A stretch of DNA of 64,000 bases, taken from Klebsormidium nitens (lineage: Eukaryota; Plantae; Klebsormidiophyceae). Positions 1 to 63,938 of the stretch are shown in pieces. Position numbers and translations under genes: made by a program. The DNA lies in assembly GCA_000708835.1 (NCBI GenBank), contig DF237054.1:135501-199500 (forward strand). The letters run 5' to 3'. The stretch's first letter is position 1; each line of letters starts with the position of its first letter. The notes under the pieces are model-generated. The model was not told where the DNA came from. It saw nothing but the letters and a program-made list of their open reading frames with translations, and searched no databases.

Positions 1-850
1 CTCCTGCATCTCCACAGCCCCAGGGCTGCACTCACTGCTCAGGTTGGGGGGCGAACGTGTCAATGGCTGGCGCCTCCTGCGCACAGCTGCCAATCCCGGA
101 TGCCGGGATGCCCACCCTTCCTGCCTCCTTGGCAGACTCATCATGGGCACTGCCTTGCCGCAAGGGTCCACATCAGCGAAGGAGATAGCCTGCCCTGCAA
201 GGTAGGGTGGCATTTGAGCATCTCTACCATGTTGGAGACTACCATGATCTGAGAGGAGGAGTTGCTTAATGTCGGGTCCATTACCTAAGCTATGTCTGCA
301 CGGCCAGACCACTGCATCCGCTGTGTGCATTTGAGTGGCGATCCTTGGCAAGACATACGCCGTCCTTTCCAAACCCCACAATCCAGCACATGGTGAAATG
401 GACCACAAAGTTAATAAGGAATCGGTACTGTCAAAACCGTTGCAAGCAGCTGTGAAACATTTTTTACAGTTTGCAGGGACTGCGAGGCTGTGAAACATAC
501 TACTGGTGGCTGAGAGGTATGGGGGGGGCGGTAACTCAGTCTGCCGCAGGGACACCAAATGTTAGGTCAAAATGCCGACGGGCTCCTCTGCTTTTTGGTG
601 CGTTATATATGAAGAGACGTCCTATGTTTCTTGTAAAGCAAATGTCCCACGTCTTATGCAACGAACGGGAGACATCAATCATAACACTCATACCTCGCGG
701 GAATTGCTCGAATACTCACTCTGCTCCTGCTGGTCCAAGCTGCTGCGATGGCGGTCCCCAGGATCCTCAACAGACTGCCTTGATTCGCCAGACTCCTTTA
801 CTAACGAGCCAATATGCGGCCGGTGACAGCTGCTGGCAGAAGCATCAGGG

Positions 851-1405
851 CGATGTGTCCAGCCATTTTTACTCAGCTCCCAAATGTAGATCCCTATTCT
901 TTTTCCAACAGACTGAACACACGGAACGTTAGACAGGATATTTCGACACAGATTCTAATTTCGAAACTGCCAGATGGACAAGCGGATCCAGGGTTTTGCA
1001 GGATTCCAGCCCTCAGCCAATCGCACGGCCGCAAAGTGATTCTGGGTCACGTGAGACAATCTATATGTGAATGAGTCTAGTGCTCACCTGCTGGTCCATA
1101 CTGCTGTTTTAGCGGTCCTTGGTTCATCCTTGTTTCTTCTGCTGTGTCCAGCCATATTTACTCAGCTCCAGCGTCGGGTCGGCATGTTAGCGTGCGCGCT
1201 CAGGATCCGGGACGGTACACTCGGCAACTTCTGACAAATTTTTTGACCCAGATTCTGATTTCGAGACTGCCAACCGATCTGGACTCTGCGAATGGGGATC
1301 TTCACCAGATTCGTTTTACAGGGCTTCAGCCATCTCCCCGTCTTTCAGCCAATCGGAACGGTCGTTGAAGATTCTCGGTCACGTGAGACAATCTTTATAT
1401 GTGGT
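851..1405. repeat. Degenerate ~300-bp tandem duplication (two copies)
   Basis: Three collinear matching blocks: tgtgtccagccat(t/a)tttactcagctcc at ~855 and ~1144; gattct(a/g)atttcga(a/g)actgcca at 951 and 1251; ggtcacgtgagacaatct at 1045 and 1377. Offsets are about 290-330 nt. Confidence 0.85.
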
Positions 1406-1803
1406 GTTTTCTAAGTTGGCACTGATTATAAGATTTCCACCCGATATTCAGGAACTTTAAGGGAGACCGTGCCGAAACCGGACGGTAGAGTGCAGGTGCA
1501 CGTGTCGACGAGTCGCAATAAAAGCGCGCCGCGACCGAGAGCCACAGCCATGACCAGATTCGCCGCGGCAAAACCGGCGGCCTTGACAATCAAGGTCCCT
1601 CGAGCAGCTCTACGATGAAAAGCTCGAGCCTGGCTGCGCTGCAAGCTGACCGAGATACGCTGCCTACGATACCGCAGCAGTCGTGACGCCTCACCTCCAA
1701 TCTGGCTCTCATCACTTACTTTCAGGGCAGCAGCGCGTCGAACGTACGGAGGAGACCATCGAACTGGCCAACCAAAGGTGCACTGCTTAGGCCGCTTGCC
1801 ATT

Positions 1804-2256
1804 GTGAGAGCGTTTGCAGTCAATATGGACAGGTGGGGAAACGTCGCAAGCCTGGAGGTGCAGGAGATAAGCGTTGCTCTGAACATGGAGGATACAGTGC
1901 TCCGCTTGTACGAGAAAATCTCTTGGATGGAAAGTCAACTGTTCCAAGCTTATGTCCAGGTGAACATTTTAAGGTCGGAGAACCTTATTTTGAAGGAGAA
2001 GCATGGCGAGGAAGTGAAGGTGCTGCAAGAAGAGCTCAAGATGGGCAGAATAATGGTGGACAAGTTGGTCACGGAGCAGAATGAGGCGACTTGCAAATTT
2101 TGCATTAAGATGTCCAAATTGGATCTGGTAAGGAGCTTCAGATCCTGCAGCAGTATATTGTGCTACATCTTCAATGAGAAATTGAAGTTGACTGTCTTGA
2201 AGCTCACTGGCTTTGATTGTTGCAAAGCAGGCTGGAAAGTTCTGAACTTGGTCTAA
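1804..2256 (+). CDS. Possible exon of a short coiled-coil protein (unrecognised family; may be a gene remnant)
   Basis: The open frame reads as heptad-like protein (LEVQEISVALNMEDTVLRLYEKISWMESQLFQAYVQVNILRSENLILKEKHGEEVKVLQEELK) and has a GTAAGG donor near 2128. The next plausible acceptor (~2289) gives a stop after 4 codons, and no clear ATG start was found. Confidence 0.3.
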   Translation: MRAFAVNMDRWGNVASLEVQEISVALNMEDTVLRLYEKISWMESQLFQAYVQVNILRSENLILKEKHGEEVKVLQEELKMGRIMVDKLVTEQNEATCKFCIKMSKLDLVRSFRSCSSILCYIFNEKLKLTVLKLTGFDCCKAGWKVLNLV

Positions 2257-4890
2257 CCAATGTGCTGACAGTTTTCTCTTGTCGAGCAGGATGCAATATT
2301 TTGAATCCTATCAACATCAAGGAAAGACCTTGAAGCTGAAAGCTTATCAGAAGGCTTTCAGATGTGTTCAGCAATAAATGATGTTTTTTGTACTATTAAC
2401 AAAGGATCACTAAAGATTTCTACAGGGGGTGCAAAAGGGAGCTATGGCGTATGTTGATGGCAATAGAGCTACAAGATAACACAGGATGTTCTGGTCAATT
2501 GTACAGTCTTCTTTCTCAGGACATTCCCACTGTTTCTGGATGCTCACATGGTTTCTAGTTGACTATGGGCCAGCGCTGACACATGCTCAATTCCTACTCT
2601 AATCATCAACATTTATAATAGTCTTTATGGGACCCTGAACTTTGCAAGGCCAAACTGCACTGTTAATACGTGGTCCATATGACACTCCCAAAACCAAGTG
2701 GAAGGGCCACCTTCTTAGCGCCCATGGTTGCTTTGACAGCCTGCAGAAGTTCAGCGCCTCAATTCCAACAAAACAAGACAGATCTAGAAACATGGCTCGT
2801 CATAAATGTCGAATTTCTCAAGGGGTCCTGCATTGAATTCTCACGTGTTTCCAGCTCCATGCATGTGTCTTTGGTACTACCGACAACCGGTTGGCATATA
2901 TCTGGAAGAAGGGACGTAATCAAGCGACCGCGAAGCATACTTCTGTGGCATTCTGTCGCCAGAGAATGATGTCAGCACTGCTCTCTGGGCGACACTTGAA
3001 GTTACGTACCGTACTGGTAGGGCCGTACAGCAGGCCGCGACGCGACCAGCGCGGCCGCGTGTTCTGGTATTCCAGCAAGCGCGCGCGCGCGGCCCGCCCA
3101 GGTCGCCCGTCGTTTCGACACTGAGTTGCATGATCTCAGCGCCCTTGTGAACAGAAAGAACATAGGAATAACATGTAATTTTTCCTGGAAACTTCAACGC
3201 GCCCTGCCAAGCTGGCTGGAATCATTGACTGTACTTTGATGTGGCATCGAGATTACTCGGTTTTGTGCACTGCGTTGATCTTCTGGTTTGGCATTCACCA
3301 AAACGTCAGTGGGAAAGATGGACGTGAGGTGGACACGTCTAGTAACTTACAAACATGCCCATGCTTGAAACGGACAGTCAAAGAAATGGGCAACGCTTGA
3401 CGTCCCCTTCCCGCCAGGACATCCAAACCGTAGGAACGATTTGTAGCCGCCCCCGCCGACATGGATCGACATACACGCACTTCAACCTTTAAGGAATCCA
3501 ATGAACTACAAGTTCACTGCCATGGCGGCACGCAAATGATGTTAAAGTTGGAGCATCATAGGTGATGCAACTAGACTTGGTGGCATTGGTCGCCTGCGGC
3601 GCCAAGATTGATGTCCACTCACAAGCAACAGACGACGGTGTCGTGTATCTTTCTTCGTCAGACCTGGAAAGACTTTCGAATTTTTCACGTCTTCTTTGTA
3701 CGTGTCACCATGTTTGTGTGGTTTCTGCACCAGGGAATCAGCAAGCCGTTCAGCGTTTCATCCGTCCAAAGCTGCACAAGAATCGTCCCACAGGATTACG
3801 ACAAAGACGTCATGGTATCGTTGGATAGGCGTAGGACTCGTGTCTTGTTGGTCGGCCCCAAGCGTCAGTTCCTTACAGAGTTCTCATGATGCGTGATCTG
3901 ATCGCAACCGGCGCAGCGATGAAAGTTGGTCTAGCTCTATCAGACGCCCATCAGACGCTTGGCTCTAGCTTTTCCATTTGCAATCAGCATCGATCAATGT
4001 GCACCGCTACAAAGATTGCGTCATAAGGCTTGATTACAAGGTCGTTTTATCCTAAGTACACTGTACACGTTTGAGCTCCGGGTAGTATACTTATAACAAG
4101 GAATAGGCTCTGCTCAAATCAGTGCACGAGTGATTCGACTGGGACTGACCTTGAGAACTAAGTCACGATGGTCCCTCATGGGGTCTACTTAACTTCTACT
4201 TCAAATCTACTTAACTTAGAGAAAACGTCGTTAAAATGGCCAAATCATGCGTTATGTAAAAGTCCCCAGGAGAGAGACATAACTTTCGGTAAAAGCGGTA
4301 GCAGCAGATGCAAGACAGGCGCTGTGTCAGGAACGGATTTGCGGATCGGGATGATCAGATAAGAAGCAAGACATCGCGATCGGCAGATGGTTACGCAAAT
4401 ATGACCGTTCTGAGTTGAGCACGGCGCACCGCATACACTGATTAAACGCTCACTAGTGCCAATGCATTCGTTTTCAGAAGACCACGCACCAACCGTTGAA
4501 AGGCGTGAAACCCAAAGTAACGCAGCGCAGGCACATGAAAGCCAATCACACATATAAGAGAGGCAAAATGGTGCATGAACGGAGCGGCAGTAAATGAGTG
4601 TATGCCTCCAGGAAAAAGTATGATTCGTCCTATGAGAATCTCCACTGTACTTGCTGTGCCGCTATCCGCTCTCAAGCCTGCTATTTTGCTAGTGCGGTCA
4701 AGCAGTGACCGTGAGCTCAATGAGTCAGTCCTGCGCAAACCCAACAAACACAAACCCTCACACTGACCTACGTGCGCGCCCTATCCTTACGTAGTACAGT
4801 CAATTGCTACCCAAACCCGTCGAACCTGATACCAACTAACTTAGCAAGGTTGAACTATGCTAACACCTCTAAGATGTAAAGAAATTCACA

Positions 4891-7800
4891 CTATTGGGTC
4901 GTTTTCTCTTCCGGCGCTTGAGCAGGGTTCATCTTTAGGTGCAGTCGCCCCGCCCCTGACGGAACGGAAGGCGGCTTCCACGGACCTTTCCGTTTCCGGG
5001 GGGTCCCGGGAGGTGTGCTCGCCGCACTCGAAGGCCCCCCCGACGCGGAACTCTCTTTCCTAGACCCGGGACCACCAGAATCTACCACCTTATCCTCTTC
5101 GCTTACACTCGTCCGAGAGTCCTGCGACAGAGAGCCGGACTTCCTGCCTGGGGTTTTCGCCTCGGTCATCTTCTCTATCGAGTTTCCGGCGCTTCTGGTG
5201 CCCGGGATCCGTCCCCGGGGTTCCGCCAGTCCGCCCCGCGGATTCCGCTGGCTGCTCACGGCAGAAGACCCCGACTGGCTCCGGGTAAGCGCCGCTCGTG
5301 GGGATGTCGGCGTGGAACGGAAACCGCTGGCGGCCGGAACGGTGCTTCCGGGAATCTCAACGTAGCTCTTCGCGGTTTTCGCCCCTTCAGCGTTACCTCC
5401 GCGCTCGCTTTGCGTCGGAACCGTCAGCACAGGCGGCCGCTTCGCTTTCGTGCCGTTCTTCGCGTTCCGTTCCACTTCCGGTCGTATGTCCGGAACGGTA
5501 ACGAAACCCGTCAGAGCATCTTTTGCATCTTGGAGCGTCTTCGGATCCTTCCCTTCGTCAAAATGACGCCAGCTTTGAGTCCTGGAGGGTGGTTGGGCGC
5601 CCAGGTCATTCCGTCCCCCGGAGTGCCGCCTGCTTTCCGCTCGGGAAGATCCGCCGGAACGGCCGGACGGGGTCGGGACTTCGGACAGTGAGAGGGGCGT
5701 CGGGAGCCACGGGTCGTCCGAAGAGATGTCGTGCACGGTGACTTCCAACCGGGCTAGATTGCCGCTGTCGGAAAGGAGTGACTCCAACCGGGGGACGTCA
5801 CCGACCGTCTGGCTCATCGTCTCTTCCCGCATCCCTGCATCAGTTCGGAATGCTTTGTGAGATGCTTGCAGATGAGTCAGTCTTTCTCCGGTGTTCGAGT
5901 GATATAAAGAAAGCAGTTTATTTTAACGCTCTTCAAATCCGGACATACGAGATAAATCTTCTTAATTCGAACGTGAAAGACGCGTCGGGCGTGCAACTTG
6001 CAAGGTGCTGTCTTCTCCGCTTTTACCTTAACCAACTTGTTCTTCCAAGCCAACATAGCCAGCGAAATGTAAAATAGATTGGTGCCTTCACTTTGCTGCA
6101 ACTTTAGACACCAATCTCGGCATGACCGAAGGTCCAACGACATTCCGAGATACAAAGTAGTAGTTATAAGTCCTAAGTCTTGATTAAACTGGGCCTACGA
6201 TGTGACTGCTAGCAGCGTTCACGTGTGATATTTCTATCCGCTAGGATGAACTGAACCACATCGTATCAACAAACTGGAATTCTAAGGTTTACAGGACTCT
6301 CCAAGCGGCTAATGACCCGCGAATTTCAAAAGCCCCTGTTGTTCCGAGTCCAAGTCTTCTACGGTTCTACTTGGGACCTCCAAGCGGTTGGATATCAAGA
6401 ATAAGGTAGCATCAGCATTGGACGATGAAAATGCCCAGCGACATATAAGCCACAGCGAAGCTCGATAAACAAACACACACCCACCAATCTTTGTACTTTA
6501 GCGTGTTGACGACTCCAGTGATTTCAAAGAAGAAAGAAGAAATGATCGAAACGGTAAGTAATTTTATTGATCTGCTTACCCATCGTAAATTGCTCCACGT
6601 GCTCCTCAAACCCCTCGCTCGCGCGGTCGCTCCGCGGGCTCGCGGCCGCGTCAAGCGCACTGAGCCGCCGGCTGGATCCTCCGTCCAGGCTGCTGACGCT
6701 GCTCTCCATGCTCGCGCGCACCGATCGCTGGATTGACGTCACCTCCAGCGAGAGAGCGCTCGCGCGCTCCTCGACCACCGTGTTCTGGCGCGAGAGCGCG
6801 CGCAGCTGCGCGAGCTCCTTCTCGTCGGGTGCCATCTCGCGCACCATGGTCGCGATGACGCGCTGCAGGCAGTAAAGTAAAGTTTGAGTTGAACATTCGG
6901 CTCTGAATAGTATAATGCGGGTTGTATGGTTGAAAACAAGGGTTTCGGGTTATATTTCGCATCGAAGGAATCTGGACCATATGTATGTCAAGAAGCTGTA
7001 GCCACGACCATCTTCAAGAAACAAAATCAGCCTGTAAACGGATAAAAGTCCGTGCGTTCTTACGCAACTCAGAACTCTCTCTTCGTATTTTAAAAGTCAT
7101 TTTCTTTGAGATGAACTCGTGGAGGACAGAACCTGAATCAAACCTCAAAGTCATGGTACCTGATTCTTAGCAGTACTCTGTGTGCCATAATCAGACGACA
7201 TGAAAAAGCGGATGCAAACTTGCAGTCTTCAACGGCGACTGGGGCTATCGTTTGATGTTGTATTGGCGAGAAGCACCAAAACTGAGGGATGAAGCTATTT
7301 TGTCTTTCTGATTGCCGGAGTGCACTGGTCCAAACGAGTGAAATCAAGTCGAAAGCTTATCAAGATATCAGGCCTTTCGAAATTACATAAGCCCAGTGCT
7401 CATGAACGAAGCCCGAGACACTATCTTTAACTGATTGTCAGGCTACAAAAATGAGCCGATGCAAACTTGCAGTCTCGAAGGCTACTGGGGCTCCCTTTAC
7501 TTCATCAAACTCCTGATGAACGGCGAGAAGCACCAAAAGGAGACTGGATATCTGTGTTCTCTTCGCGTTTGCCAAAATGACCCAGCCTAAATGGAGTTGT
7601 GTTGCAGAAATTCATGAGGCCTGCTTAATTTACACGAACTGTGTTCACGCGTGAAGCGGGCCTCACCTGCAGATGCTGCACTTGTTGCCGCAGCGCCTCC
7701 TCCCCTTCGCTCCCTGCGGCCGCGCGCGGCACTACCATCCACAGCTCGTCCGCGTGTCCGGCCACTCCCGACTCGACACGTGTCCTCGTCACCTCCAGAA

Positions 7801-10800
7801 CCTCCGCGCGCAAAACCTCGCACCGCGCCTCGCACTCCTCGAGCGCGCCGCGAAGCCATGAGATCTCGCGTTCCGAGTCCGCGCGCGCGTCCGCGGACTC
7901 CGTTGCCTGCTGCTTCAGCGCGCGCTCGAGGCGCGCGACCTCGCGCCGGAGCGAGGGGACCTCCTCGTGGGCGCGCTCGCGCGCGCTCAGCAGCGACGTC
8001 AGGCTGACGACCTGGTCCCGGAGCTCCTGCTCGACGGAGTCGCCCGCGAACGACACGTGGTCCATCTGCAGCGCGAGCGGTTCAGACCGCGCTTTGCGGA
8101 CCGGTGCCCCGTAGAGAAGGTTATCTTCAACCGATTCTGACATCACATCTTCCGTTCGCTCGTTACGGTCCGCTTCTTCTGTCCGCTCGATAGGGAGAGT
8201 TTTCGTGATGACGTCGTTGAAGTGCCGTCTTCCGGCCCCTTCTCCGCCCTCCTCAGCGGAACGCTGCAGCGTGGCTGGCGCCGAGGCCGACCGGAGCCGC
8301 TCCGCCGCGACCGCCTCCCAGGCCAAAACCTCCAAACCCCGCAGGGACGCGCGGCGCAGGCCCACGATCATCGGCGGCAGCGCGGCCGCGGTCTCGCTCT
8401 TTGCGCGCGGCTTCCCCTCGCGGCCGGCGCGCGCGCCAAACTCCTCTTCCGGTTCCCGCCCGGCCACCGGCTCCGAAACGGTGAGCGACAGGCGGTGCAT
8501 GATGCTCGCGCCCAAACCCTCCAAACCCTGGATCCGGCTCGCGCGCAGCGCCTCCGCGGCCGCGACGAGCGCCGCCTCGCGGTCGGCCAGCTCTGCGCGC
8601 AGGCTCAGCAGCTCTTCCTTCACGATGGCCACGTCGGCCTCGCGTTTTCTCGCCAATACTAGCTCCTCCCGCAGCCTCGCCACGAGCGCCTCCAGCGCCT
8701 GCCGGCTAGTATGTTCCTCGCTCTCGTTCTCGGAGCTGATGGTTGACGTCGGCGTGACGTTGCGCTGCTGCCGGCCTGCCAGCTGGCGCCTCAAGAGGGC
8801 CACTTCGAACATGAGGGCGGGAAGTTCTACGAGCGCCTGATGGTACGTTTCCAGGTTCCCATTAACCAAGGCGATCTCTGTGCCCAGGGTTGCTAAGTTT
8901 CTCTGACGGTCCACCTCCTCTCGTTGTGATCCATTCCCGGCTAGGACTTCGCCGAAAACATTCTTGCCAGCAGAAAAGCCCTCGTCAAAGTGTTCCGGAA
9001 CAACTCCGTCTGGGGTTATCCCGTCCGTTCTCCCGACGGAAACCTTCCCAATCTCGACCCGCTGTGGCAACTCGAACGAACTCGCCCTGACGTCACACCC
9101 CAAAAGCATGCTCTCCAGGCGGCTGACTCGCGCCGGCAGATCAAACGAGTCCTTGCTCGAAGCACTTTCAAACCGGGTGGGAAATGCAGTCTCTGCTGAG
9201 TCGCCTGCTTCCTCGGTTGAGATCGAACGGTCCCCAATATCATCATCGGCTTTCGCATTCACACCAACCACCGTGTCCGGTGTGAATACCCCGAGCACTC
9301 CCTCGGGCGGGTCGACGGCGGATGAAGGGTTCCTGGTCTGCTCCCCGGTGGACCGCCCCGACAGCATGCTCTCCAGCCTGGTTATCCGCACCGGCAGGTC
9401 GAGCGACTCCGCTGGCGACCGCTCGTTATTTTCTTGCAGTCCCTTCTGTTTCGCTTCCGCTTCCTCTCCAGTTCCGCTTCCGCTGACGGTCTCGCTCCCG
9501 CCCCCGCTTTCGGACTCGCTTCCGATTCCGTTTCCGTTTGCAGTCTCTCGCAGCATACTTTCGACCCGGGCTACTCGTATCGGAAGGTCTAACGAGCCCT
9601 GGGGTGTCCGTTGCTCTCCGTGGCCGCTTCCGCTTTCGCGTCCGTTTCCGTTTTCGTTTTCGTTTCCGTTTCCGGAATCCCGCTGCATACTCTCGATCCG
9701 GGTTACTCGTACCGGTAACTCGAACGAGCCCTGGGGCGTCCGTTCCTCTCCGTGGCCCGTTCCGTTTCCGCTTCCGCTTTCGGTTCCGATTCCGTCTCCA
9801 ATCTCTGGCAGCATACTGTCAAACCGGGTCACTCGTACCGGTAACTCAAACGATCCCTGGGGCGTCCGTTCCGGTGTGGCACCAGGCGAAGGCCCAGGCG
9901 AAGGAGCGACGGGGTTCCAAGCACAGCCCAGCAGAGGTTCCGCTGTTCCGCCCGATGAAGGTTCCGCCGTTCCGGCCTGAGATCGCAGCGTGTCTATCGC
10001 CTGGGAGACGGGACTGCCGGCAGCATTGCCGGTGACGCCCGTGAATGAGGCGCTGAAGCTTCTCGTTCCGCCGGAACATCCCGTTCCGGCTGCAGTGGAT
10101 TCCGCTCTAACAGTGTTGAGGCGGAGCCGTAACTCCGCGCACTGCTCGCGCAGGGCTTCCAGCTCGAGACGCTCGGCGGCTGCCAAGGCAGGCGCAGCAG
10201 GATTCACGCCATCCTCTGCGGAGCGGCAAAAGCACGTGATTTATAGCCTGCCTATGGCCGTACATATATTGCACCAGAGAGAAAAGGGAGAAAGCAAGTC
10301 CGATCGAGTGTAAGATAAAGTGTGAGACCTTTCAAACACAGCCGCTCGCTGTGACGTGAATTTGAGGGGCTGCGTGTCAATTGATTGTTTGTCGCAAGTT
10401 TGTTACAGTGCATCGCTCGTACCTGGGAAATCTTTGGATTCTCGAAGACATGAGAGGTCACCACTACGGGCCGCTTACCCATGGCGACCGGTTCCTCAAA
10501 GGCGGTGATGACCTCCGCCTCTTCTCTCGGAACCTCTCGTGGTAAATGTTCGGGGACGCCGGTCTGGTTGGGCAACGGTTTTGCAGCCGAGCTCGCTTCC
10601 AGCATGGATTCAACCTGCAAATGAGATGCGCTTTAGATCTTGAAAACAGTTACGCAAAGCATCATACAAGATGGGTCGGGTTCACAAGCCAAGAACTAAA
10701 TTCACCTAAACAGGAAAGACCCAGATTGGAGAAGCGTGCAAGATTGCTTCGGATTCAAAGCTTCGAAGCCAGAAAACGGTTCTCCTTACTCACCTCGTCA

Positions 10801-13800
10801 CTTGTTTCTGTCCCCGCAAGTGGTACGTGCCCGCTCGCGCTCAGGTTCTGGACGATTCCATGCTCTCCAAGCTTCGGCGGAATGACGATTCCGCGCTGTC
10901 CAAGCTCCGGCGGCGGAATGACGTCGGCAGAAATACGTCCGGCTCGCAAAGTGTCCAGCTCGCGTTGGAGAGCTGCGAAAATCGTGCAAATCAAAACCTT
11001 AAGTCCCCAAAGATTCTGTCTAAAGTACGCAATGCTGTTGATGAATGAAGCAACCGGTCATGACACTTCTTTCCAGAAAGGACCTCAGTACAAATGAATG
11101 AAGCGTTTCGCACATGTGATTTTGAGGGCATTAGGGAGATTATCGTTTCTACTTGAACAGGCTTAGACAAACAAGTCTGTTCGTCGGACCCCAGGAGCAA
11201 GCAGTACCCCTCTTTCGCTGTAGCTTCTCGTCATGTTTGTATGTTGAACGTGAAGCAAAATCCTCACCGGTCGCTCTGCCTTCTGCAGCCTCCAGTCCCG
11301 CTTTCAGTTCCGTCACAAGCTCTTCCGCTCCTGCCACGATGGCGGAATGAACCAGATCGTCGACTCTGTTTCCAGAGTAACCACCGTCGGTCCTGTTCAA
11401 ACCGCTCTGGGATCCGCCCACGCCTTCCGTCTCTGCCTCCCCTTCCATGCTTTCGGGCTGAGTCGACTTAGTAAACGTCGGCCTGACGTCATCCTGCCGG
11501 AGGTTTGCCAGCTGGCGCTTGCAAAGGGCCACTTCAAACATCAGCGCGGGGAGCTCTGCTAATGCCGCTCCGTACGCTTCCAGCTCGGGACTTTCCACCG
11601 GGCACGTCTTCTGCTGTTCTTGTGACTGGGTTGACTGCCCGGTTACGCCTAAACCGGGCCCACTCTCTCGACTTTCTCCAGTCTGCGTCAACCCCTCGGT
11701 TACTTCCCCCGGTTGGTTCAAAGAGAGGGCGCCGAGCATGCTTTCCAGGCGGGCCACTCGTTCCGGGAGTTCAAAGGCGTCGGAAGATATCCCGGCAGAC
11801 CCGTTGGAAGAGATCATGCTCTCCAGCCTAGTTACGCGCACCGGTAGGTCGAACGATCCGGAAGGCGACCGCTCGGTGGACTCCTCAGGGGTTTGGTCGC
11901 CGGAAGGCGGGGTGTCTTTGATGCTCTTCCGTTGGGTCACTCGGACGGGCAAGTCAAAGGAGTTGCTGGGCGACCGGTCCGCAGTGAAATGCTGCTCCTG
12001 GTCGCCGAGCAGGATAGATTCCAGCCGACTGACTCGCACGGGGAGGTCGAAGGATCCCAGCGGCGACCGGGATAGCCCATCTGCCGGTTCGGTTAGCAGA
12101 ACTTCCGCTTTCTGGTCGCCGTCCAATTCTGAACTATCGTGCGCTGATTCATTTTCCGGTCCCACATTCAGTTCCTGAATGTGAGTCCCAGCGATGGAGA
12201 CCCCTCCACCTGACGCCGTTTTCCCGACAGCCGTAGCGCTCTCCCCTGAATCTCGACTTTCTCGCCCCGTCTCTCCGGACTCCGTCTCGTCTGTCTCGGT
12301 ACCGTTCTCCTCCGTGTCCTTCCGTTCCGTTACAGTCTCGCTCGAAAGTTCCGCCGGAGCTTCTCCATCCTTGACACCCCGCCCGGTCACCTCTGCCGCC
12401 GTCTCCGTGTCTCTTCCTGCCAGGTACAACATCCGTACCAACTGCTCATTCTCTTCCCCTTTTAACTCCGCTTCTCTTCGTACCCTTTCCAATTCATTCT
12501 CCACCCTCTCCAATGTAGAAACCAGCTCTTCCGTCTCTCTCTTCGCCGCCTTCAGATTGCCACCCAGAGTCTCTTTCTCATTCAATTGCCGCGCCTTGAT
12601 CTCCGAAACCGTCGACAGCGCCAGGGTGATGTCCGCCCCCATCATCTCCGTAAACAACCGTAACTCTGAAGCTAACCCGTGTTTACCGCTCGATAAGCTT
12701 ACCAACCCGCTCAGAAGCTTCGCTCTCGCTCCAGCCATCCCCTCTTTCTTTCCCCTCGAGAACCTCTCGTTCGTTTCCAAGGTCTCTTTCAGCGCCTCAA
12801 TCTCTGATCTCGCGCTTTCCAGCTCCGCTTGGGAAACCAAGATTCGTGCTCTGCCTTCTTCGACCTCCCTCTCAGCATCCACACATCTTTTCTGTGTTCC
12901 TACGATCTCTCCCTTCAACCGTACCGTCTCTTCCTCCAGCACTCTATTAGAATCAGCCCCGGCCGCCACTTCCTCCTCCAGCCGCCGCTGCACTGATTCT
13001 AACTCCCGCCCCCTACCCTCCTCGGCGCTCTCCAAGTCCGCCACTCTGTTTTCCGCCACTTCGAGCGTTGCCGAAACCTCCCTAAACCTCTCCCCCGCGG
13101 CCGCGGCCGCGTCGCCCATCTCCGCGACCCTCAAACTCGCGGCTGCCAAGTCTCTCTCCAGCGCCGCCAAAACCTCGCCAAACCTCTCTCCCGCCGCCGC
13201 GGCCGCATCGCCCATCTGCTCGATCCTCAGGCCCGCGGCCGCCAGATCGCTCTCGAGCCTTGCCGTCTCTTCCCGCGCACTCGACAGCTCGCGTTCCGTT
13301 TCCGCTGCCGCTTGCCTGAGGTCTTCCGTTTCCGTTAGAGCGCCCGCCAGCCGCGCCTCCGCCTCATCCCGGGCCCTTTCAGCGGCCGTCACTTCGGTGC
13401 TTAGGTCAGTATGCGCCTTCTTAGCCGCTTCCAGCTCGGAGCTGACGTCAGAGTGGCCGTTATGAGCCGCCTCTAGCTCCGCTCGAACGTCAGCATGCGC
13501 CTTTTGGGCCGTCTCCAGCTGTTCGATGACGTCGGCACGCGTCCTCTGGACCGCCTCCAGCTCCGAGATGACGTCAGCGTGGGCTTTCTGAGTCTCCTCC
13601 AACTCGTGCATCGCCTCAGAGCGCGCCCTTTGCTCTGCCGCCAGCTCTAGGCTGACGTCACCATGCGCCCTCTGCGACGCCATCAGCTCTGCGCTGACGT
13701 CCGCATGGGCTTCCTGGCTTGCCACCAGTGCGGCTCTAACGTCAGCATGTTCCTTCTGGGCTTCTTCCAATCTTGCCCTGAAGTCAGCCTGGGCCGTCAG

Positions 13801-58277: not shown

Positions 58278-61200
58278 CTAGTGTAAGTAGACAGCATAGG
58301 TATCAAAGAAGTAAACGGGATCAAAGATTAGAAGGTTCGTGAACGTAACTTGGTCCTGATGGTACCTATCAGCAGCAACTTTCACTTCGCAAACAGGAAA
58401 AACAGACAAAAAATAACGTCATGATTTCGATGCGTTACCGCTGGATGGAGGCGATCACGTGCGCCTTTGCTTCCGGACCCAGCCCGCCAAAGGCGAGGAG
58501 TTCTGTCTCCACCGGATCTGCGCAGAAGTCGACCAGCTGCCTGCAATGCCGGCAGCCGCAATCGCAGTCCACACGCGCCGCCCAATCGCGCGCCCCCAGC
58601 GGAGGTTCGCTGCAGCGCTTTTCGAGCGCTTCGAGACAGCCTTGGCACAGCTCCATGAACCAGGCGGGCGTTGCCTCTTTGCGTTCTTTGAGCCAGGCCC
58701 GGAGCTCCGTTAGAGTCGGCACGAGAGTCTTCTCTAGGTCATAGAGCCGCGGATGGGCCACGAAATGCGCGACCAAACTCTTCAAAGCCTCGCCGTCGAA
58801 GCCCCAGCAGTGCAGCGCTGCCAGCAGCCGGGGATGGAGTAATTGTGGTAAGGAGAGCGCTCCTCCGGGCGGGTCGACTCGTTTTCGCCGAGCAACAGTG
58901 CGACCAATTTGCCGGACAACTTTTGGCCGATGTCCGCAGCCAAAGAAGCGGCGTGTCCGGATAGGACCTCGTGCCGTCCTGTCGAGGCGCTGGGCATCTG
59001 AACGTCTGGATGCAGCAGTTGCACCGCCTCGAAGAAAGCCCTGATCGCCGATGAGGAACACTTAAGGCTTGGTCCGATGAGGCAGTCGATCGCGGGCGTC
59101 CAGGGTGTCCACCCAAAGCGATCCAGGACTTGTTGGAAGTAGTCCTCGGACAAGAGGTCTATCAGACGAGTCAGTCCGTAAGATCCTTCCGACCACTTCG
59201 AGCACACGGCACTGACCACTGCTGCCAAGGCCTCGCCGCTCACAGCCAATCTCTCTTGCTCGTCTCTGAGGGTTTCTCCGTTTCCTTGACTTTGCCCGGC
59301 ACTGGCGGACAGCTCCCGTTCATCTTTCTTAGTCGAGAGCTCTTTTGTCGTGTTTGTCTGCTCTTCTGAAACGGTGTTGCTTATCTGAAGCAGCACCTGG
59401 AAGCAATCCTTCCGTGCATACTCATTGCCGGCGAACTCTCGAACCAGCCAGTCGATGAAAGCCGGCGCCAGGGCTCTCCAACCGAAGCGGGCCGCGAGAT
59501 GCTCCACAAAGCAGCGATTGTTGAAGCTCCGTGGGCCGTAGTACTCTCGGATGAACACCTGTGCAACAAGAACTGAGAGATAAGAGCTAAATTTGATGAT
59601 GTTCCAGAGTTACAGCTAGTAGCAATTCGTCTGAATCTTGGGGTATGCTACTCGCTCAGGACTAGCTCAATCGTATGCTTTGGGTTTCTGACTTTTTTCT
59701 TCCACTTTTTGTTTCAAGATCAGAAGTGAAGAGATTGGCTCTAACCCATTTTGAGACCTTGAAGCATAGGTTGCCTCACCTTTGCAAGATCCACATAGCC
59801 GTGTTTTGCTATCAGCCCTGCGACGGTAGGCTTTAAGAATTGGAGAAGCGCCAGGTCGGGGCGCAGAGCTCTTAGAAGGCGCGATCGGCAAGTCTTCGAC
59901 AGCGTATACGTGTCCGTGCTCAAGAATCAGTGTTGCCACCGTCGTTGCCTGCCCGGGTGTTAGGTGCCCCCCGGACAAGCAGGCGGCTTCCAGAATGCGC
60001 GGCAAAGCCGCCACGGTGTAGGAGAGAAAACAAGATTCTTGCAAATACGAGAAGCACAACACTTAAAGACGTCGTCTTTTCAGCGACATATAGCTGATAT
60101 GCATTGGATGCCTGTTCCTGCGCTGCTACTTTACCGGGGTGCTTGCGAGTGACCGCGAAAACAAAAACTCTTCAACTTCCACAACGCCCCCTTCAAAAGA
60201 AGCTGCCACTGACGACTGCAGTGCTTGTCTTCTGCTGATTGGCTAGGGGTATCACTTCGTTCGCCTCCCCTCAGTAAGCAGGAGCCTGGAATGTAGAACC
60301 TTTTGACAATCTCCAAAGAAGTCTATGTTGCTGAGCTTCCGGTGGTCTCACCTTCAAAACCGTTTCTGGGTCGTTGGTGCAAGCTATCTCCCAATGCCTG
60401 GCGTGCGGCCAGATCACGAGAGCAGCATGGTGGTACCAGCGCTCTTCCACCATCCCTTCGTTCCGGGTAAAGCGCTCATCTTCTTTTTGCCACTCCCGGC
60501 CGTCGAGAGCCGTTTCAGGAATCAGCTCTGCAAATAGAAGCGGTCATGAAGAGCTTTTACTAGGACGGTCCAAGAGCCGTATCCTACGATAACCCGATGA
60601 GAAGCACGTGAGCCTCATCGTAAGGTTTGGATTCCCCTTGTGACGCTTTGGCTCTCCGTTTGGAGAGTTAGACGGTCACCAGGCGCGGGGTTCTTAGCAA
60701 ACGGGTTTAGATTGCCGTGGGGAGAAGTTTTCTGCTTCTTTATCAGTCTAGATCACCACCAAGGTCTTGAAATTTTTATGAAGGCGATCATTGAGCTCTG
60801 TGGCATGATAACTTACCCTCCCTCTCAACTTCAATTCTTTTGTAGGCGCCTGAATATCCATGTAGTTTGTAGATGTTGCTCAGGGAATATGAGGTGCGGA
60901 ATTCGGTATCTCCAAGGTCCACGTTCCGCTCTTCGAACTTCTGTAGCATTCCTAGGAAGATGTGGACGGCAGGGGCGTTGCAGGTCTGCACACAAGTGGC
61001 ACAAATGAAGATCTTGAAGCACGAATAGCATTTGTAATCCTCCTAAATTGCACAAGCGGGCCTCTCGTCAGCTATTGCGCAAGCCTGGATACGCGTTGAC
61101 AGCTTCGGATGCGTCGCAATCTCTGAGCAGAATGAGGTTGCATCCCCAGTTGCTACAGAACCAAGTAAAATAGGTTGCTCCAAGCCTCTTTGTTGCGCAT

Positions 61201-61425
61201 CCTACCTTAGCTGCTTGGAGGAAGACCTCGACGGTCGCTATGTCCTTCCCACGAAGCGTGTCATATGACAAGCTGTCTTGAGTGTACTGGTGTTTCAAAG
61301 GAATCACCAGTTTCTTCCTCCCTTCACTATCTTGGTTCCATCGCTTGATGGCATCGGCGACTTTTGCGGTAGCTTCCGTGTTGTCGGCAGGGCCTTGGAT
61401 CCGATTGCGATCTTCTCGAATTGAC
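58278..61425 (-). pseudogene. Spliced, frameshifted C-terminal part of a 2OG-Fe(II) oxygenase-family protein of the bacterial/fungal type
   Basis: Exon translations show motifs I recall from that family: KKLVIPLKHQYTQDSLSYDTLRGKD, FTRNEGMVEERWYHHAALVIWP, DWAARVDCDCGCRHCRQLVDFCADP. Protein-like sequence switches frame without splice sites near 58830-58860, and probably near 59860-59920. The N-terminal catalytic domain is not in the window. Confidence 0.65.
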
Positions 61426-61458
61426 CTTTGCGTGAGTTATTTGATGTTCTCCAGATTT

Positions 61459-62349
61459 CTAGCTCTGTATCGCTGCTCTCATTCTACGGATTAGTGAAAC
61501 CGCCTCCTGAAGACATTCCCGTTGGCGCGTCATCACGTAGGCAATCTGCAGATGTGCTACGCGTTGCTGTTCTCCTTCCGAGATGAACAACGGGTCTATG
61601 TTGCCTAGACGCGTCATGCTGGCCAGCATACAAAACTGCTGATGCTCATCGATCCTCCTCTGCACAATTCTGATGCCTCCGTGCCCTCCATTGATGTAGT
61701 CTCGAGCGTAGTGCTCGACGAATCGGAACGCTAAGAGATTCGTCGGACAATACGCCCGCTGTACGAGGATGCTGACACTCCTACGTCGCTGCAAGCGACG
61801 GTCCCTCTTGCATGCTTCTCTCTGAAGCACAGCTTCCATCTTAGCCAAGAGATTCTTTCTCCCGTATCGAAGCATGGACGACTAAAGAACGTCTACGAAG
61901 CGGTAGTAGTGTTCACCGCGAGAGTTCTTAATCACCTCGATTCGCTTCAGATCTTCTGTAGTGAGAAAGTAGCGTTTGCGAGCCAGCGCAGCTCGCATGA
62001 GTGCCGTCTTGCGTTCGAATAAGCTATTAACCGTGTCGAAGTTGAAGCGGATATGCCACCTCCCTTCATCGTCCTCGAAGTACCCGTATATGCAAGAAGA
62101 CTCAAGATCCTCTCGCTTCTTCGAATCCATTCCCCTTTCGTCCAGGATCTCAGACGAGATCCTTGCGCTCTCTCCCTCGCATCTCTTCGAATATCTGGCC
62201 ATTTTAGTGGGCCACAGGTAGTCAACGGCCTGTTGGTGACTCGTTGACGTACATGCAAGAGCTGTCAGGGAGGCCGCGTCTATATCCGAGTGCGACTCCA
62301 ACAGATTCACCAGATTGTGAGCACCCAGAGTCTCGATAGGAGCTGCCAT
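61459..62349 (-). pseudogene. Intronless ~296-codon F-box-like / XPA-like-domain ORF interrupted by one in-frame TAG
   Basis: ORFs 61882-62349 and 61459-61875 are in the same frame, separated by TAG at 61882-61884. The N-terminus is F-box-like (LVNLLESHSDIDAASLTALACTS). The middle segment ARKRYFLTTEDLKRI..KN....YYRFVDVL*SSMLRYG resembles the XPA-like DNA-binding fold pattern (inference). Confidence 0.55.
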
Positions 62350-62513
62350 TCTCGTCGTGAAGCGTTTGGTCCCTCCGTTGCTCGACCTTCCTCCTAAGCC
62401 GGGTGACCATCTGATTCTCGTACCCCATGAACATGGTATTCAGTTTCGGCTCTGCACATGTGACGTGGCATCTGAGTTTCGAAATTTTTCATTAGTACTT
62501 GGTAGATACATTC

Positions 62514-63938
62514 ATGTCGGCGCGTACCTGGGATGGCAGCAGTTCTGCTGTCATGGGAACTTCCGGCTACGACAACAACAAGCCGTATGGACCGTTGACC
62601 TGTCCTGGGGGATACTACGTTTCGAAGGTGGAAGGGAACTCCTGGGATGGCAACGTCGGCTACATATCTTCCATCACTTGCACCAACTACCTGGATCCGA
62701 CCAAGACGATAAAGATTGACGGAGCCATAGGGTATCCCAATCAGGGAGCCAGTCAGTCCTTCGATTGCGGCCCGAGGGGAATGACGGGTGTGCTCTATAG
62801 CGCTGGTACCATCTTGGACAGCATGTACCCCATTTGTGGTCTCGACAAAGACGCCTGGATGAAGTTCGATCAGAAGACTAACAGGTTGATAGGCGCCGAC
62901 CCCAATTGGCCGCACATCGGTAATCCGAGCTCCACATTGGCCCCCCAATGGTGCCAACTGTCAGGGAAACCGGCCGGAGTCAACGCTTTCGTGACCGGGC
63001 TCAGAGGGCAGAATTCCAGCAAGTATGGAGGTCGGATAACCAGTGCCAACTTCACGTGCAAGGACTTCACGGACATCGACGCCGTCAAGAAAAGCCCCGA
63101 CCGCATGGCAGACGTCTGCAATCAGGTCGATCCGCTGACTCCAGAACTAGCAGGTGCGATCTCGTGCCCTTCCTACATGAGGAGCTATTGTTCGGGTCTA
63201 AACGCGTGGAGTTCCAAGTGCAGCGACTATTACGGTAAGAATCCAGGCTTAACGGTGGATGTGGACGACAATAAGTTTGCTTTCTGTACGCAGGGCGACA
63301 ACTACAAGGATCCAAAGTGTCTCTCGTTCTGCGATTGGCAGGGGGCAGGGAGCGGAGATCCGGATGCGCGTCCGGCTTACAAGGGTAGATGCAACGACCA
63401 TTATGCGAGGGTCTGCAAGGGACAGTCCTCGGACCTCTGCTCCTGCTTGAACAGACCGAACCTCGAGGACTGGGCTGGGACGGAAGGTTATGCAGGCATC
63501 GCTGCGGCGGTGACCTCATCGAAGGGAGCTTCCACGAAGCCACAGTGCTACTTCAAGGCGTGTCGCGATAACGGATACAAGATCTTTGCCAATCAGACGC
63601 CGAGCGTGAATTGCCCGACGTGCCTCAACTCCGTGAACGTGTCCGCTCAGTATCAGGCGGCGGCGTCCGTAGGCGACGTGGTGCAGCAGTGCGGTGCTTC
63701 CGGAGGGGGTGGTGGGACCTCGGACGCCAACAAGAGTTCTACCGCCCAGACCACGAGCACCAGCACGAGTATGATTCAGGACATGAGGACGAAGGCCGCT
63801 GCTCTGCCTCCGTGGCAGCTGTGGGGTATCGTCGCTCTGCTGGTGCTGCTCGTCGCATTCGCTTTTTGGTACTTCACGAGTGGTTCTGCAGAAGAGGATG
63901 GCACGGACTATGACAGACTTTCGTCTCGACTGCCTTGA
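62514..63938 (+). CDS. Intronless 474-aa membrane protein: beta-prism (jacalin/VMO-I-like) domain, poxvirus A16/G9/J5-like Cys-rich domain, C-terminal TM helix
   Basis: First ATG at 62514. Three C..G...V.g..G....I.s...C repeats in the N-terminal ~190 aa. The Cys array ends CSCL...PQCYFKACRDNGYK...CPTCLNSVNV...VVQQCG, the spacing typical of NCLDV entry-fusion A16/G9/J5 proteins. S/T/G linker, TM segment WQLWGIVALLVLLVAFAFWYF, short acidic tail. Confidence 0.75.
   Translation: MSARTWDGSSSAVMGTSGYDNNKPYGPLTCPGGYYVSKVEGNSWDGNVGYISSITCTNYLDPTKTIKIDGAIGYPNQGASQSFDCGPRGMTGVLYSAGTILDSMYPICGLDKDAWMKFDQKTNRLIGADPNWPHIGNPSSTLAPQWCQLSGKPAGVNAFVTGLRGQNSSKYGGRITSANFTCKDFTDIDAVKKSPDRMADVCNQVDPLTPELAGAISCPSYMRSYCSGLNAWSSKCSDYYGKNPGLTVDVDDNKFAFCTQGDNYKDPKCLSFCDWQGAGSGDPDARPAYKGRCNDHYARVCKGQSSDLCSCLNRPNLEDWAGTEGYAGIAAAVTSSKGASTKPQCYFKACRDNGYKIFANQTPSVNCPTCLNSVNVSAQYQAAASVGDVVQQCGASGGGGGTSDANKSSTAQTTSTSTSMIQDMRTKAAALPPWQLWGIVALLVLLVAFAFWYFTSGSAEEDGTDYDRLSSRLP

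Follow-up and report, generated by a model that had tools for sequence, protein, structure and literature searches.

How giant viruses of walled algae recognize the cell surface and fuse their internal membrane is, to our knowledge, largely unknown. A locus in Klebsormidium, a streptophyte alga close to the land-plant lineage, bears on this problem. An earlier note on the terminal 64 kb of scaffold DF237054.1 of Klebsormidium nitens (the window, meaning the whole stretch of DNA analysed here) had described an intact ORF whose C-terminal half resembles A16, G9 and J5 of the poxvirus entry-fusion complex (EFC) and whose N-terminal half resembles a lectin. Is this ORF viral, is it related to A16/G9/J5, and what is it doing in an algal genome? 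The only systematic survey finds that all known algal giant viruses lack both widespread entry-fusion families, A16/G9/J5 being one, and builds a host-range scenario on their loss (PMC10100723; Kao et al., 2023).

The ORF and its annotation

The intact ORF of the earlier note is borne out, with K. nitens as the host: the frame runs uninterrupted from an ATG at 62514 to a stop at 63936-63938, and an in-frame TTG lies at 62499. The features of the gene and its flanks are collected in Table 1. The public model of the gene, KFL_001050310 (protein accession GAQ82268.1), has 390 aa, as it begins at Met14 and drops 72 aa as an in-frame 213-nt ‘intron’. Public K. nitens gene models, that is, cut introns into intronless viral ORFs. 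The 474-aa ORF is far beyond chance, because its relatives score at E = 2e-258 to 6e-88. Single-protein and profile searches of Pfam, PHROGs, NCBIfam and PDB sequences returned nothing relevant; matches to HVO_1552_C, FixQ and RIFIN in these searches were set aside as transmembrane or low-complexity noise.

Table 1. Coordinates of the ORF, its predicted protein regions and its flanks in the 64-kb window
Feature	Position	Strand	Basis or remark
Short upstream motif	62486..62497	+	12 nt, 16 nt before the ATG; upstream-flank alignment, common to the two closest orthologues
Intact intronless ORF	62514..63938	+	474 aa plus stop; K. nitens KFL_001050310
Head domain, residues about 14-182, predicted beta-prism I	62553..63059	+	AF2 pLDDT mostly >90; Foldseek
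All-helical Cys-rich module (stalk), residues 183-395, family-defining	63060..63698	+	Domain model pLDDT 90.7
Probable J5-like eight-Cys block, residues 301-393	63414..63692	+	Cys spacing, co-loss, BFVD fold matches
Low-complexity G/S/T-rich linker, residues 396-432	63699..63809	+	Predicted disordered; pLDDT <50 for 397-418
Predicted C-terminal transmembrane helix (tail anchor), residues 433-455	63810..63878	+	AF2 helix, hydropathy
Short acidic C-terminal tail, residues 456-474	63879..63935	+	Sequence, AF2
Post-stop stretch to the end of DF237054.1	63939..64000	.	62 nt

Relatives of the ORF lie among giant-virus genes

Among 1.84 billion proteins searched, the relatives of the ORF come to 45 representatives; in scans of IMG/VR, neither the family alignment nor the upstream ORF had any relative. 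A second iteration with the trimmed C-terminal alignment (A3), made from members that have a locus reference, gave just four members already known, probably because its candidate list had filled up with linker words. Wherever the context of a relative was read, it was a dense array of NCLDV-type genes or, in K. nitens, a region collinear with one, which supports the giant-virus origin claimed earlier. The genes beside the relatives include those for a Pox_A32-like ATPase, mRNA capping enzyme, RNR, Erv1/Alr, dUTPase and TFIIB, and further MCP, PolB, D5 primase, Rpb2 and AEP primase. The contigs of the relatives are dense, intronless and up to 546 kb long. On one of them (L007) the MCP is closest to the capsid proteins of PBCV-1, and on another (L005) 1.2 kb separates an Erv1/Alr gene from the orthologue of our ORF. 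The family spans chlorovirus-like contigs, other giant-virus contigs and Klebsormidium's own genome.

The K. nitens assembly holds at least three copies of the family, at least two of them in addition to KFL_001050310. The second, on DF237338.1, is likewise intact and lies in an 11.4-kb block that is 93% identical to a viral-type metagenome contig; its scaffold is 89 kb long, and the copy, deep within it, is flanked by viral-type genes to one side and by a host-type gene to the other. The third comes from an orphan scaffold of 4 kb. Earlier work has already described core NCLDV genes from Klebsormidium (Gallot-Lavallee and Blanc, 2017; PMC5294986). Like the endogenous giant-virus DNA described in green algae in that work, our ORF is contiguous with K. 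nitens host DNA, and elsewhere in the assembly further copies sit within more extensive viral-type regions. Unlike those elements, it is a single detectable viral-type gene in the window, at a scaffold end, and that survey's set of core markers does not include its family. These data support the identification of the ORF as an endogenous giant-virus (Nucleocytoviricota) gene.

Predicted architecture and constraint

In the AlphaFold2 model (pLDDT 84.6), the beta-prism I head is followed by a helical Cys-rich module, then by a linker and finally by a C-terminal transmembrane helix. The Cys-rich C-terminal half and terminal anchor seen in the earlier note are confirmed, with 16 of the 22 cysteines in residues 202-393 and a hydrophobic segment at about 433-455 (hydropathy maximum 2.44 at residue 436). 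The 474-aa protein has no signal peptide. A C-terminal hydrophobic segment is found in 42 of the 49 family members, and an N-terminal one in only two. Relative to the nearest relative, the stalk is the most constrained region (pN 0.06) and the linker, transmembrane segment and tail evolve fastest (pN 0.40); dN/dS comes to about 0.03 for the stalk and 0.08 for the protein as a whole, with synonymous sites near saturation (pS about 0.70).

The head has a predicted lectin-type fold and is swappable

The earlier note's assignment of the head to a jacalin/VMO-I-like beta-prism holds for the fold, but not for the sequence profile. The model of the head is all-beta, with three pseudo-repeats bracketed by the Cys pairs C30/C56, C85/C108 and C147/C182. 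By Foldseek, it matches more than 40 jacalin-type chains (prob 0.99-1.0, TMt 0.5-0.73); the PDB matches include Calsepa, banana lectin, ZG16 and WGA16 (TMt 0.5-0.73, prob 1.0, E about 1e-3), as well as VMO-I (E 2.7e-3). The 474-aa protein has no match to the Pfam Jacalin (PF01419) or VMO-I profile, and PF01419 is reached by two of the 49 members, only at E = 0.1. Where alignment columns are conserved from head to head, the residue is mostly Cys or Gly.

The modelled head thus has the same three-sheet fold as the beta-prism I proteins (Calsepa, banana lectin, ZG16/WGA16, griffithsin and VMO-I) and as domain II of insecticidal toxins, which is also a beta-prism I. Compared with jacalin-related lectins, it is only 8-17% identical, has one Cys pair bracketing each repeat and, unlike them, is fused to a membrane-anchored stalk. 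Structural modelling therefore supports a lectin-type beta-prism I fold, and the head may be predicted to bind sugars.

Five members carry other heads: PAN in four and Vps62-like in one (P0025, P0027, P0029, P0030 and P0036), and MCP and PolB adjoin P0025. These PAN/apple- and Vps62-like-headed proteins share the Cys-rich stalk, linker, transmembrane anchor and NCLDV context, but have another N-terminal binding domain in place of the beta-prism, which indicates that the head is swappable.

Is the stalk related to A16/G9/J5?

Of the stalk cysteines, the fourteen between C226 and C393 inclusive each occur in 86% of members or more. The last eight (C301, C309, C311, C345, C350, C367, C370 and C393) form a block in which the numbers of residues between successive cysteines are 7, 1, 33, 4, 16, 2 and 22. 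The Cys positions quoted for vaccinia J5 give gaps of 8, 1, 19, 4, 17, 4 and 19, and Cys2-x-Cys3 and Cys4-x4-Cys5 are singled out as diagnostic (PMC10100723). Both spacings are invariant in 39 members. In the model, the block starts with short helices and ends in a long extended loop, an arrangement also described for the J5-like domain, whose long loop contains cysteines (PMC10100723).

If the block shares the published J5 disulfide topology (1-2, 3-5, 4-6 and 7-8), then bonded cysteines may be lost together. Across the stalk, the co-loss pairs are C202-C218, C226-C236, C273-C293 and C311-C350. The last of these corresponds to bond 3-5, with four joint losses and one single loss (Fisher p 3e-5, counting sequences and not independent events); the other three pairs of the topology have too few losses. 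The single testable disulfide thus agrees with J5.

Searches of BFVD with the whole model returned, among others, named A16/G9 homologues from giant viruses. ‘Myristylated protein’ entries were matched from Fadolivirus (E 7.8e-4), Barrevirus (1.1e-3) and Klosneuvirus (6.6e-3), a name that may stand for either the A16/G9/J5 or the F9/L1 family. A ‘Pox virus entry-fusion-complex G9/A16’ protein of Dikerogammarus haemobaphes virus 1 was matched at E 1.3e-2 and prob 0.97, and entomopoxvirus A16L and G9R homologues are also among the matches. The matches A0A8F8SJN0, A0A886NGV7, A0A7S6NYV7 and A0A811A8W0 carry no protein name. At least seven proteins named A16/G9 homologue or myristylated protein are enriched in the top 36 BFVD matches, and the named A16/G9-type matches fall between E 8e-4 and 5e-2 (prob 0.63-1.0), values that come with a large rmsd and that generic helix-plus-transmembrane similarity may partly drive. 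Cellular Cys-rich surface proteins, which the earlier note had named as the competing outcome, were not the best matches.

The alternative is that the protein is a giant-virus membrane adhesin, on the virion or the infected cell, in which an independent Cys-rich stalk merely resembles A16/G9/J5 and serves attachment or spacing, not fusion. Sequence profiles speak for it. With the E cut-off relaxed to 10, PF03003, to which the earlier note had pointed, still matches neither the 474-aa protein nor any of the 49 family members, and profiles built from 8 sequences (A1) and 49 sequences (A2) find no solved A16/G9/J5 chain by sequence. With the domain-only model, a vaccinia EFC chain ranks first in the PDB and three more A16/G9 entries are among the 59 matches, but the matches to the solved vaccinia A16/G9 fold are insignificant (E 1.4-9.3, TM score at most 0.31). 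The vaccinia A16/G9 and EFC entries returned were 9uzo, 9hpa, 9hls and 8gp6. The stalk also has eight further cysteines upstream of the block (C202-C293), six of which (C226-C293) occur in 86% of members or more, and A16/G9/J5 is reported absent from the algal giant viruses surveyed (PMC10100723). An F9/L1 homologue co-occurs with A16/G9/J5 in 93% of non-pox giant viruses, and the L1R_F9L Pfam entry is absent from the +/-10 kb flanks of nine relatives. Against an independent stalk stand the enrichment of named A16/G9 or myristylated proteins in BFVD, the vaccinia EFC chain as top PDB match, the two invariant diagnostic spacings and the one disulfide that agrees with J5. We consider an independent stalk less likely.

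The A16/G9/J5 link claimed earlier is thus half supported, with BFVD folds, Cys spacing and one disulfide pair for it and the PF03003 profile against it. Like A16/G9/J5, the family is encoded by Nucleocytoviricota, combines a Cys-rich ectodomain, modelled as helical and ending in a long loop, with a C-terminal transmembrane segment and no signal peptide, and in one relative has an Erv1/Alr oxidase encoded nearby. Unlike them, it has a Cys3-Cys4 loop of 33 residues (19 in J5), carries an N-terminal head (lectin-type, PAN or Vps62-like) of a kind not mentioned in PMC10100723, and occurs in alga-associated viruses. Nor does it have a Met-Gly start: the N-terminal Met-Gly myristoylation motif belongs to A16 and G9, not to J5, and our protein begins Met-Ser, with Met-Gly in only three of 49 members. 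Collectively, these data suggest that the last eight cysteines of the stalk probably form a divergent J5-like domain, and we infer homology to A16/G9/J5.

A model for the viral protein

The reading that we favour, with moderate confidence, is that the ORF is an endogenous NCLDV structural gene encoding a tail-anchored, lectin-headed protein with a divergent J5-like stalk, present in K. nitens as a passenger relic. Stated more simply, it is probably an endogenous giant-virus gene for a divergent J5-like entry or attachment protein. In the mechanism that we propose, the protein would be made without a signal peptide in the virus-infected cytoplasm, an Erv1/Alr-type thiol oxidase encoded by the virus itself would oxidise its ectodomain, and its C-terminal tail would insert it into the virion membrane. 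The swappable head (a beta-prism here, PAN or Vps62-like elsewhere) would then bind a host surface ligand, probably a glycan, and the J5-like stalk would take part in membrane fusion or entry.

More tentatively, it is possible that alga-associated giant viruses, contrary to current inference, never lost A16/G9/J5 but kept it in a form too divergent for BLAST or Pfam and fused it to interchangeable heads, giving a single-polypeptide ‘bind-and-fuse’ subunit of which intact copies were repeatedly deposited in a streptophyte alga. If confirmed, a divergent J5-like module that carries exchangeable binding heads would change the picture drawn in PMC10100723, and would provide a concrete candidate for attachment and entry as well as a marker gene for finding such viruses.

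A viral relic or a host gene?

As the ORF is intact and so is the second K. nitens copy, we considered the co-option by the alga that the earlier note had raised beside recent insertion. The product could then act as a surface lectin, in fusion or in receptor interference (superinfection exclusion). At 0.69, the GC3 of the ORF falls inside the host-exon range for the window (0.62-0.72) and exceeds that of the nearest relatives (0.49 and 0.59). The ORF is also contiguous with host genes on DF237054.1, namely a CBF-domain gene and a giant coiled-coil gene; there is no cluster of viral or hallmark genes at the locus, and the ORF is the only viral-type match in the window. However, the scaffold ends 62 nt past the stop, so that the remainder of the insertion, if any, would be unassembled. 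The topology argues against a simple host surface role: with no signal peptide and a tail anchor, the 22-Cys ectodomain would, without a viral assembly pathway, face the reducing cytosol. Moreover, with pS at about 0.70, the host branch cannot be credited with the measured constraint, and literature searches by gene identifier found no evidence of expression in K. nitens. Co-option is thus very unlikely; most probably, the K. nitens copy persists as a passenger relic on the margin of an insertion.

That there is no integration at all, and the locus reflects a chimeric join at a scaffold end or a virus present in the sequenced culture, would fit a gene that fills the last 1.5 kb of its scaffold, similarity to viral relatives that begins only about 30 nt upstream of the ATG, and the third copy on its orphan scaffold, but it is highly improbable given a window without any N or gap, the embedding of the DF237338.1 copy between viral-type and host-type genes, and the published NCLDV inserts in the K. 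nitens genome (PMC5294986).

Flanks of the ORF

The ORF had been described earlier as lying between two broken neighbours, a claim that our analysis does not support: no downstream neighbour is assembled, and the upstream region, at about 58435-62202 on the minus strand, is annotated as a single multi-exon gene of 572 aa. The ORF pieces of this upstream gene, each searched separately, matched no Pfam entry and no family, and the adjacent 155-aa upstream ORF had no relatives of comparable length; the gene can therefore be called neither broken nor viral. The post-stop stretch shows no similarity to the 3′ flanks of the relatives.

On the 5′ side, the last detectable virus-type similarity is the short upstream motif. 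We rejected it as a general promoter of viral loci, since it is gene-specific and does not recur elsewhere in the loci of the two orthologues (L003 and L005). It occurs once in the window, once in L003 and once in L005, each time upstream of a stalk-family gene, where it may serve as a promoter or 5′UTR element.

An uninterrupted ORF of giant-virus origin

The ORF under study is open from its ATG through its stop codon and encodes 474 aa, so the earlier description of it as intact stands. The scaffold that carries it, DF237054.1 of Klebsormidium nitens, is 199,500 bp long; the window is its final 64 kb, and both terminate 62 nt past the stop codon. In public data the ORF appears as hypothetical protein KFL_001050310 (GAQ82268.1), in a model that starts at Met14 and drops 72 conserved residues of the beta-prism, three conserved cysteines among them, as an in-frame 213-nt GT-AG ‘intron’. 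Because all relatives keep the stretch that is spliced out, and because the public model of a second K. nitens copy is similarly shortened (397 aa versus a 469-aa ORF), the ‘introns’ of both models are probably artefacts of eukaryotic gene prediction on intronless viral ORFs.

A word-based search returned seven relatives at 40-80% identity, and an exhaustive profile search, covering 1.84 billion representatives, yielded just 45 proteins with E up to 1e-3. The K. nitens copies aside, all members looked up come from metagenome or Logan assemblies. Wherever the context of a member was read, it was a dense, intronless giant-virus gene array, which bears out the viral origin proposed in the earlier note. 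Among the family-bearing loci, L001 encodes a Pox_A32-like ATPase, mRNA capping enzyme, RNR small subunit and SNF2 helicase; L002 and L003 encode P11_C, TFIIB, YqaJ, dUTPase and DUF5871; L005 encodes Erv1/Alr, a kinase-receiver fusion, cyclin and dUTPase; L006 encodes a D5 primase; and L007 encodes the major capsid protein, PolB with an intein and a capping methyltransferase. In contigs of 454 and 546 kb, capping enzyme, RNA polymerase Rpb2 and AEP primase lie near family members. Among solved structures, those of PBCV-1 capsid proteins come closest to the L007 capsid protein, which makes part of the family chlorovirus-like; other lineages are indicated as well, by the contig that carries an RNA polymerase subunit.

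A beta-prism head on a constant stalk

To view the architecture of the protein, we ran AlphaFold2 with a 49-sequence alignment. The model (mean pLDDT 84.6, pTM 0.72) consists of the parts listed in the table, and the stalk modelled by itself reached a pLDDT of 90.7. The target has no N-terminal hydrophobic segment; across the family, a C-terminal anchor is present in 42 of 49 members and an N-terminal hydrophobic stretch in two.

Against the PDB, Foldseek matched the head to the jacalin-type lectins Calsepa, banana lectin, ZG16, WGA16, artocarpin, griffithsin and heltuba (prob 0.99-1.0, target-normalised TM 0.5-0.73, E about 1e-3), to VMO-I (E 2.7e-3) and to beta-prism domains of insecticidal proteins. 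As all of these share the beta-prism I fold, the earlier guess at a lectin-like beta-prism holds structurally, but not at the level of sequence profiles: the target matches neither Jacalin nor VMO-I, and two members reach Jacalin only at E = 0.1. Most columns conserved among the 21 members with a head are Cys or Gly, and each repeat has one Cys pair. Judging from its fold, the head may bind sugar.

Other members carry different N-termini, namely PAN/apple domains (P0025, P0027, P0029 and P0030) or a Vps62-like domain (P0036), and some are stalk alone. The constant part is stalk, linker and anchor, and the head is interchangeable, as would be expected if a receptor-binding module sat on a conserved membrane-proximal machine. 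In a comparison with the nearest relative (73% aa identity), the stalk has a pN of 0.06 and the head one of 0.14, against 0.40 for linker, TM helix and tail. Overall dN/dS is about 0.08, with pS about 0.70. The protein has clearly been under purifying selection; because pS is close to saturation, this constraint reveals neither selection in the host nor the age of the insertion, which the earlier note had suggested to be recent. The GC3 of 0.69, inside the host-exon range and above the nearest relatives, is at most a weak hint of amelioration.

Relation of the stalk to A16/G9/J5

The earlier note had likened the C-terminal half, by its Cys spacing and TM anchor, to the poxvirus A16/G9/J5 entry-fusion family. 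Sequence comparison did not recover this link: none of the 49 members matched PF03003 even at E up to 10, and profiles of 8 and 49 sequences found no solved A16, G9 or J5 chain. Fold comparison of the stalk-only model with solved vaccinia structures was weak (E 1.4-9.3, TM at most 0.31). In favor of the link, A16/G9 entries make up four of only 59 PDB matches of that model, one of them ranked first (9uzo_B; the others are 9hpa_B, 9hls_B and 8gp6_A). Among the BFVD structures matched by the whole model are entries titled ‘Myristylated protein’, from Fadolivirus (E 7.8e-4), Barrevirus (1.1e-3) and Klosneuvirus (6.6e-3), and one titled ‘Pox virus entry-fusion-complex G9/A16’, from Dikerogammarus haemobaphes virus 1 (DhV1; E 1.3e-2, prob 0.97), together with entomopoxvirus A16L and G9R homologues and a salmon gill poxvirus A16L. 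Such enrichment of one small family is not explained by chance. A16/G9/J5 homologues are listed for Barrevirus, Klosneuvirus and DhV1 (Kao et al., PMC10100723); the entries titled only ‘myristylated protein’ may correspond to some of these.

The cysteines also favor the link. The last eight (301, 309, 311, 345, 350, 367, 370 and 393) are separated by gaps of 7, 1, 33, 4, 16, 2 and 22, compared with 8, 1, 19, 4, 17, 4 and 19 in vaccinia J5, from positions quoted in PMC10100723. C-x-C and C-x4-C, singled out there as conserved spacings, are invariant in 39 of 39 members with eight cysteines aligned. C311 and C350, cysteines 3 and 5 of the block, are lost together (four joint losses, one single, Fisher p 3e-5, although related sequences may share one loss event), matching the published J5 3-5 bond. 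The target also agrees with the published description of A16/G9/J5 in its short helices leading into a long loop with cysteines, its C-terminal anchor and its lack of a signal peptide. Eight further cysteines lie upstream of the block, with co-loss pairs C202-C218, C226-C236 and C273-C293. Taking both sides together, we lean towards the stalk being a very divergent J5-like domain, extended upstream by these eight cysteines.

If this homology is true, a J5-like module has been fused to lectin or PAN heads, a combination of which we found no description in the literature; if it fails, the proteins form a new family of giant-virus membrane proteins with a beta-prism head. Both A16/G9/J5 and F9/L1 are reported to be missing from every isolated giant virus that infects algae, and ancient losses have been inferred, for example at the origin of Algavirales (Kao et al., PMC10100723). 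The present family, found in a streptophyte alga and in giant-virus contigs, chlorovirus-like ones and others, escapes the BLASTP and orthogroup criteria of that survey.

Like A16, G9 and J5, the target lacks a signal peptide and has many structural cysteines. Poxvirus proteins of this type are oxidised in the cytoplasm by a viral Erv1/Alr-type pathway and tail-anchored in the virion membrane. In L005, the target’s orthologue has an Erv1/Alr gene 1.2 kb away. The target may likewise be oxidised in the cytoplasm by such a viral pathway and held by its tail in that membrane. In the virion, its head would then bind a ligand on the host surface, and its stalk would take part in fusion or entry. 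Expressed by the alga without the viral oxidation pathway, the ectodomain would face the reducing cytosol, which counts against simple co-option as a surface lectin.

Genomic surroundings and further copies

The claim that both neighbours are broken is not confirmed: no downstream neighbour is assembled, and the upstream one is annotated as one multi-exon gene, whose ORF pieces, searched one by one, have no Pfam family. Directly upstream of the target and divergent from it are two back-to-back, ATG-initiated ORFs of 155 and 138 aa, 6 nt apart, which the annotation merges into that 572-aa spliced gene. Neither has a Pfam match or relatives of comparable length; for the adjacent 155-aa ORF, 5.8 billion proteins and IMG/VR were searched, and neither yielded any.

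The two closest orthologous loci resemble the window from a 12-nt motif, 16 nt before the ATG, to the stop codon, and window 34.5-62.48 kb resembles none of the viral-type family loci compared. The motif, common to the three closest orthologues and not recurrent elsewhere in their loci, may be a gene-specific promoter or leader element. Farther upstream are host genes: a CBF-domain gene, a DEAD-box exon and a giant coiled-coil gene with long exons spanning 7.6-34.4 kb. The very long ORFs there (423-2008 aa) have a high content of E, A, L and R and a strong skew in both GC and AT; Pfam gives only weak coiled-coil families for them, and they look like exons of this single gene. The window contains zero N.

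Features of the window, the target protein and related loci
Feature	Location	Position	Strand	Remark
Target ORF	window	62514-63938	+	ATG 62514; stop 63936-63938
All-beta head	target	about 14-184 aa		AlphaFold2
All-helical Cys-rich module	target	186 to about 395 aa		AlphaFold2
G/S/T-rich linker	target	between module and TM helix		disordered (AlphaFold2)
TM helix	target	433-455 aa		AlphaFold2
Short acidic tail	target	after TM helix		AlphaFold2
Upstream gene, 572 aa	window	about 58435-62202	-	multi-exon, annotation
155- and 138-aa ORFs	window	61459-62349	-
12-nt motif	window	62486-62497		15-16 nt before ATG
12-nt motif	L003	about 9974-9985		15-16 nt before ATG
12-nt motif	L005	upstream of 824
Very long ORFs	window	7625-34361	-
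KFL_003890240	DF237338.1 (L008)	within 1-12038		intact 469-aa ORF
KFL_015830010	DF238532.1 (L009), 4-kb scaffold	within 1-4085		cut by contig start, remainder open
Inverted duplication	L002	8382-11414; 18375-21406
Kinase-receiver fusion, cyclin	L003	12346-13893
Kinase-receiver fusion, cyclin	L005	3974-5501
TnpB/Fanzor-like gene	L007	154-1779		OrfB_IS605, Cas12f1-like TNB
TnpB/Fanzor-like gene	L009	1870-3913		OrfB_IS605, Cas12f1-like TNB; resolvase domain
RNA polymerase second-largest subunit	L010	14497-19039	one strand	three ORFs
TIR-NB-ARC-LRR gene	L001	3169-5889

K. nitens has at least two more family copies, KFL_003890240 and KFL_015830010. The former sits in a block of 11.4 kb that shares 93% identity with metagenome contig L002; just past the gene comes a weaker 84% block and then no match, placing the gene at the edge of a viral-type region. 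Since both share only about 40% identity with the window protein, the K. nitens copies come from different viruses, which implies several independent insertions. An earlier study had already reported NCLDV core genes in Klebsormidium (PMC5294986).

KFL_015830010 adjoins a resolvase and a TnpB/Fanzor-like gene; in two unrelated loci, L007 and L009, such genes lie at most about 1 kb from family members. The closest viral-type relatives have nearby a protein kinase fused to a response-regulator receiver domain and then a small cyclin, a pair that is unusual for a virus. In L002 the family gene and its neighbours are present twice, inverted, in a palindromic arrangement; either a viral genome has a terminal inverted repeat or hairpin here, or the arrangement is an artefact of assembly. 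The 454-kb giant-virus-type contig (L010) has its RNA polymerase second-largest subunit called as three ORFs. L001, a 125-kb contig otherwise with giant-virus genes, carries a plant immune-receptor-like gene, and may be host DNA with an insertion or a virus with a host-derived gene.
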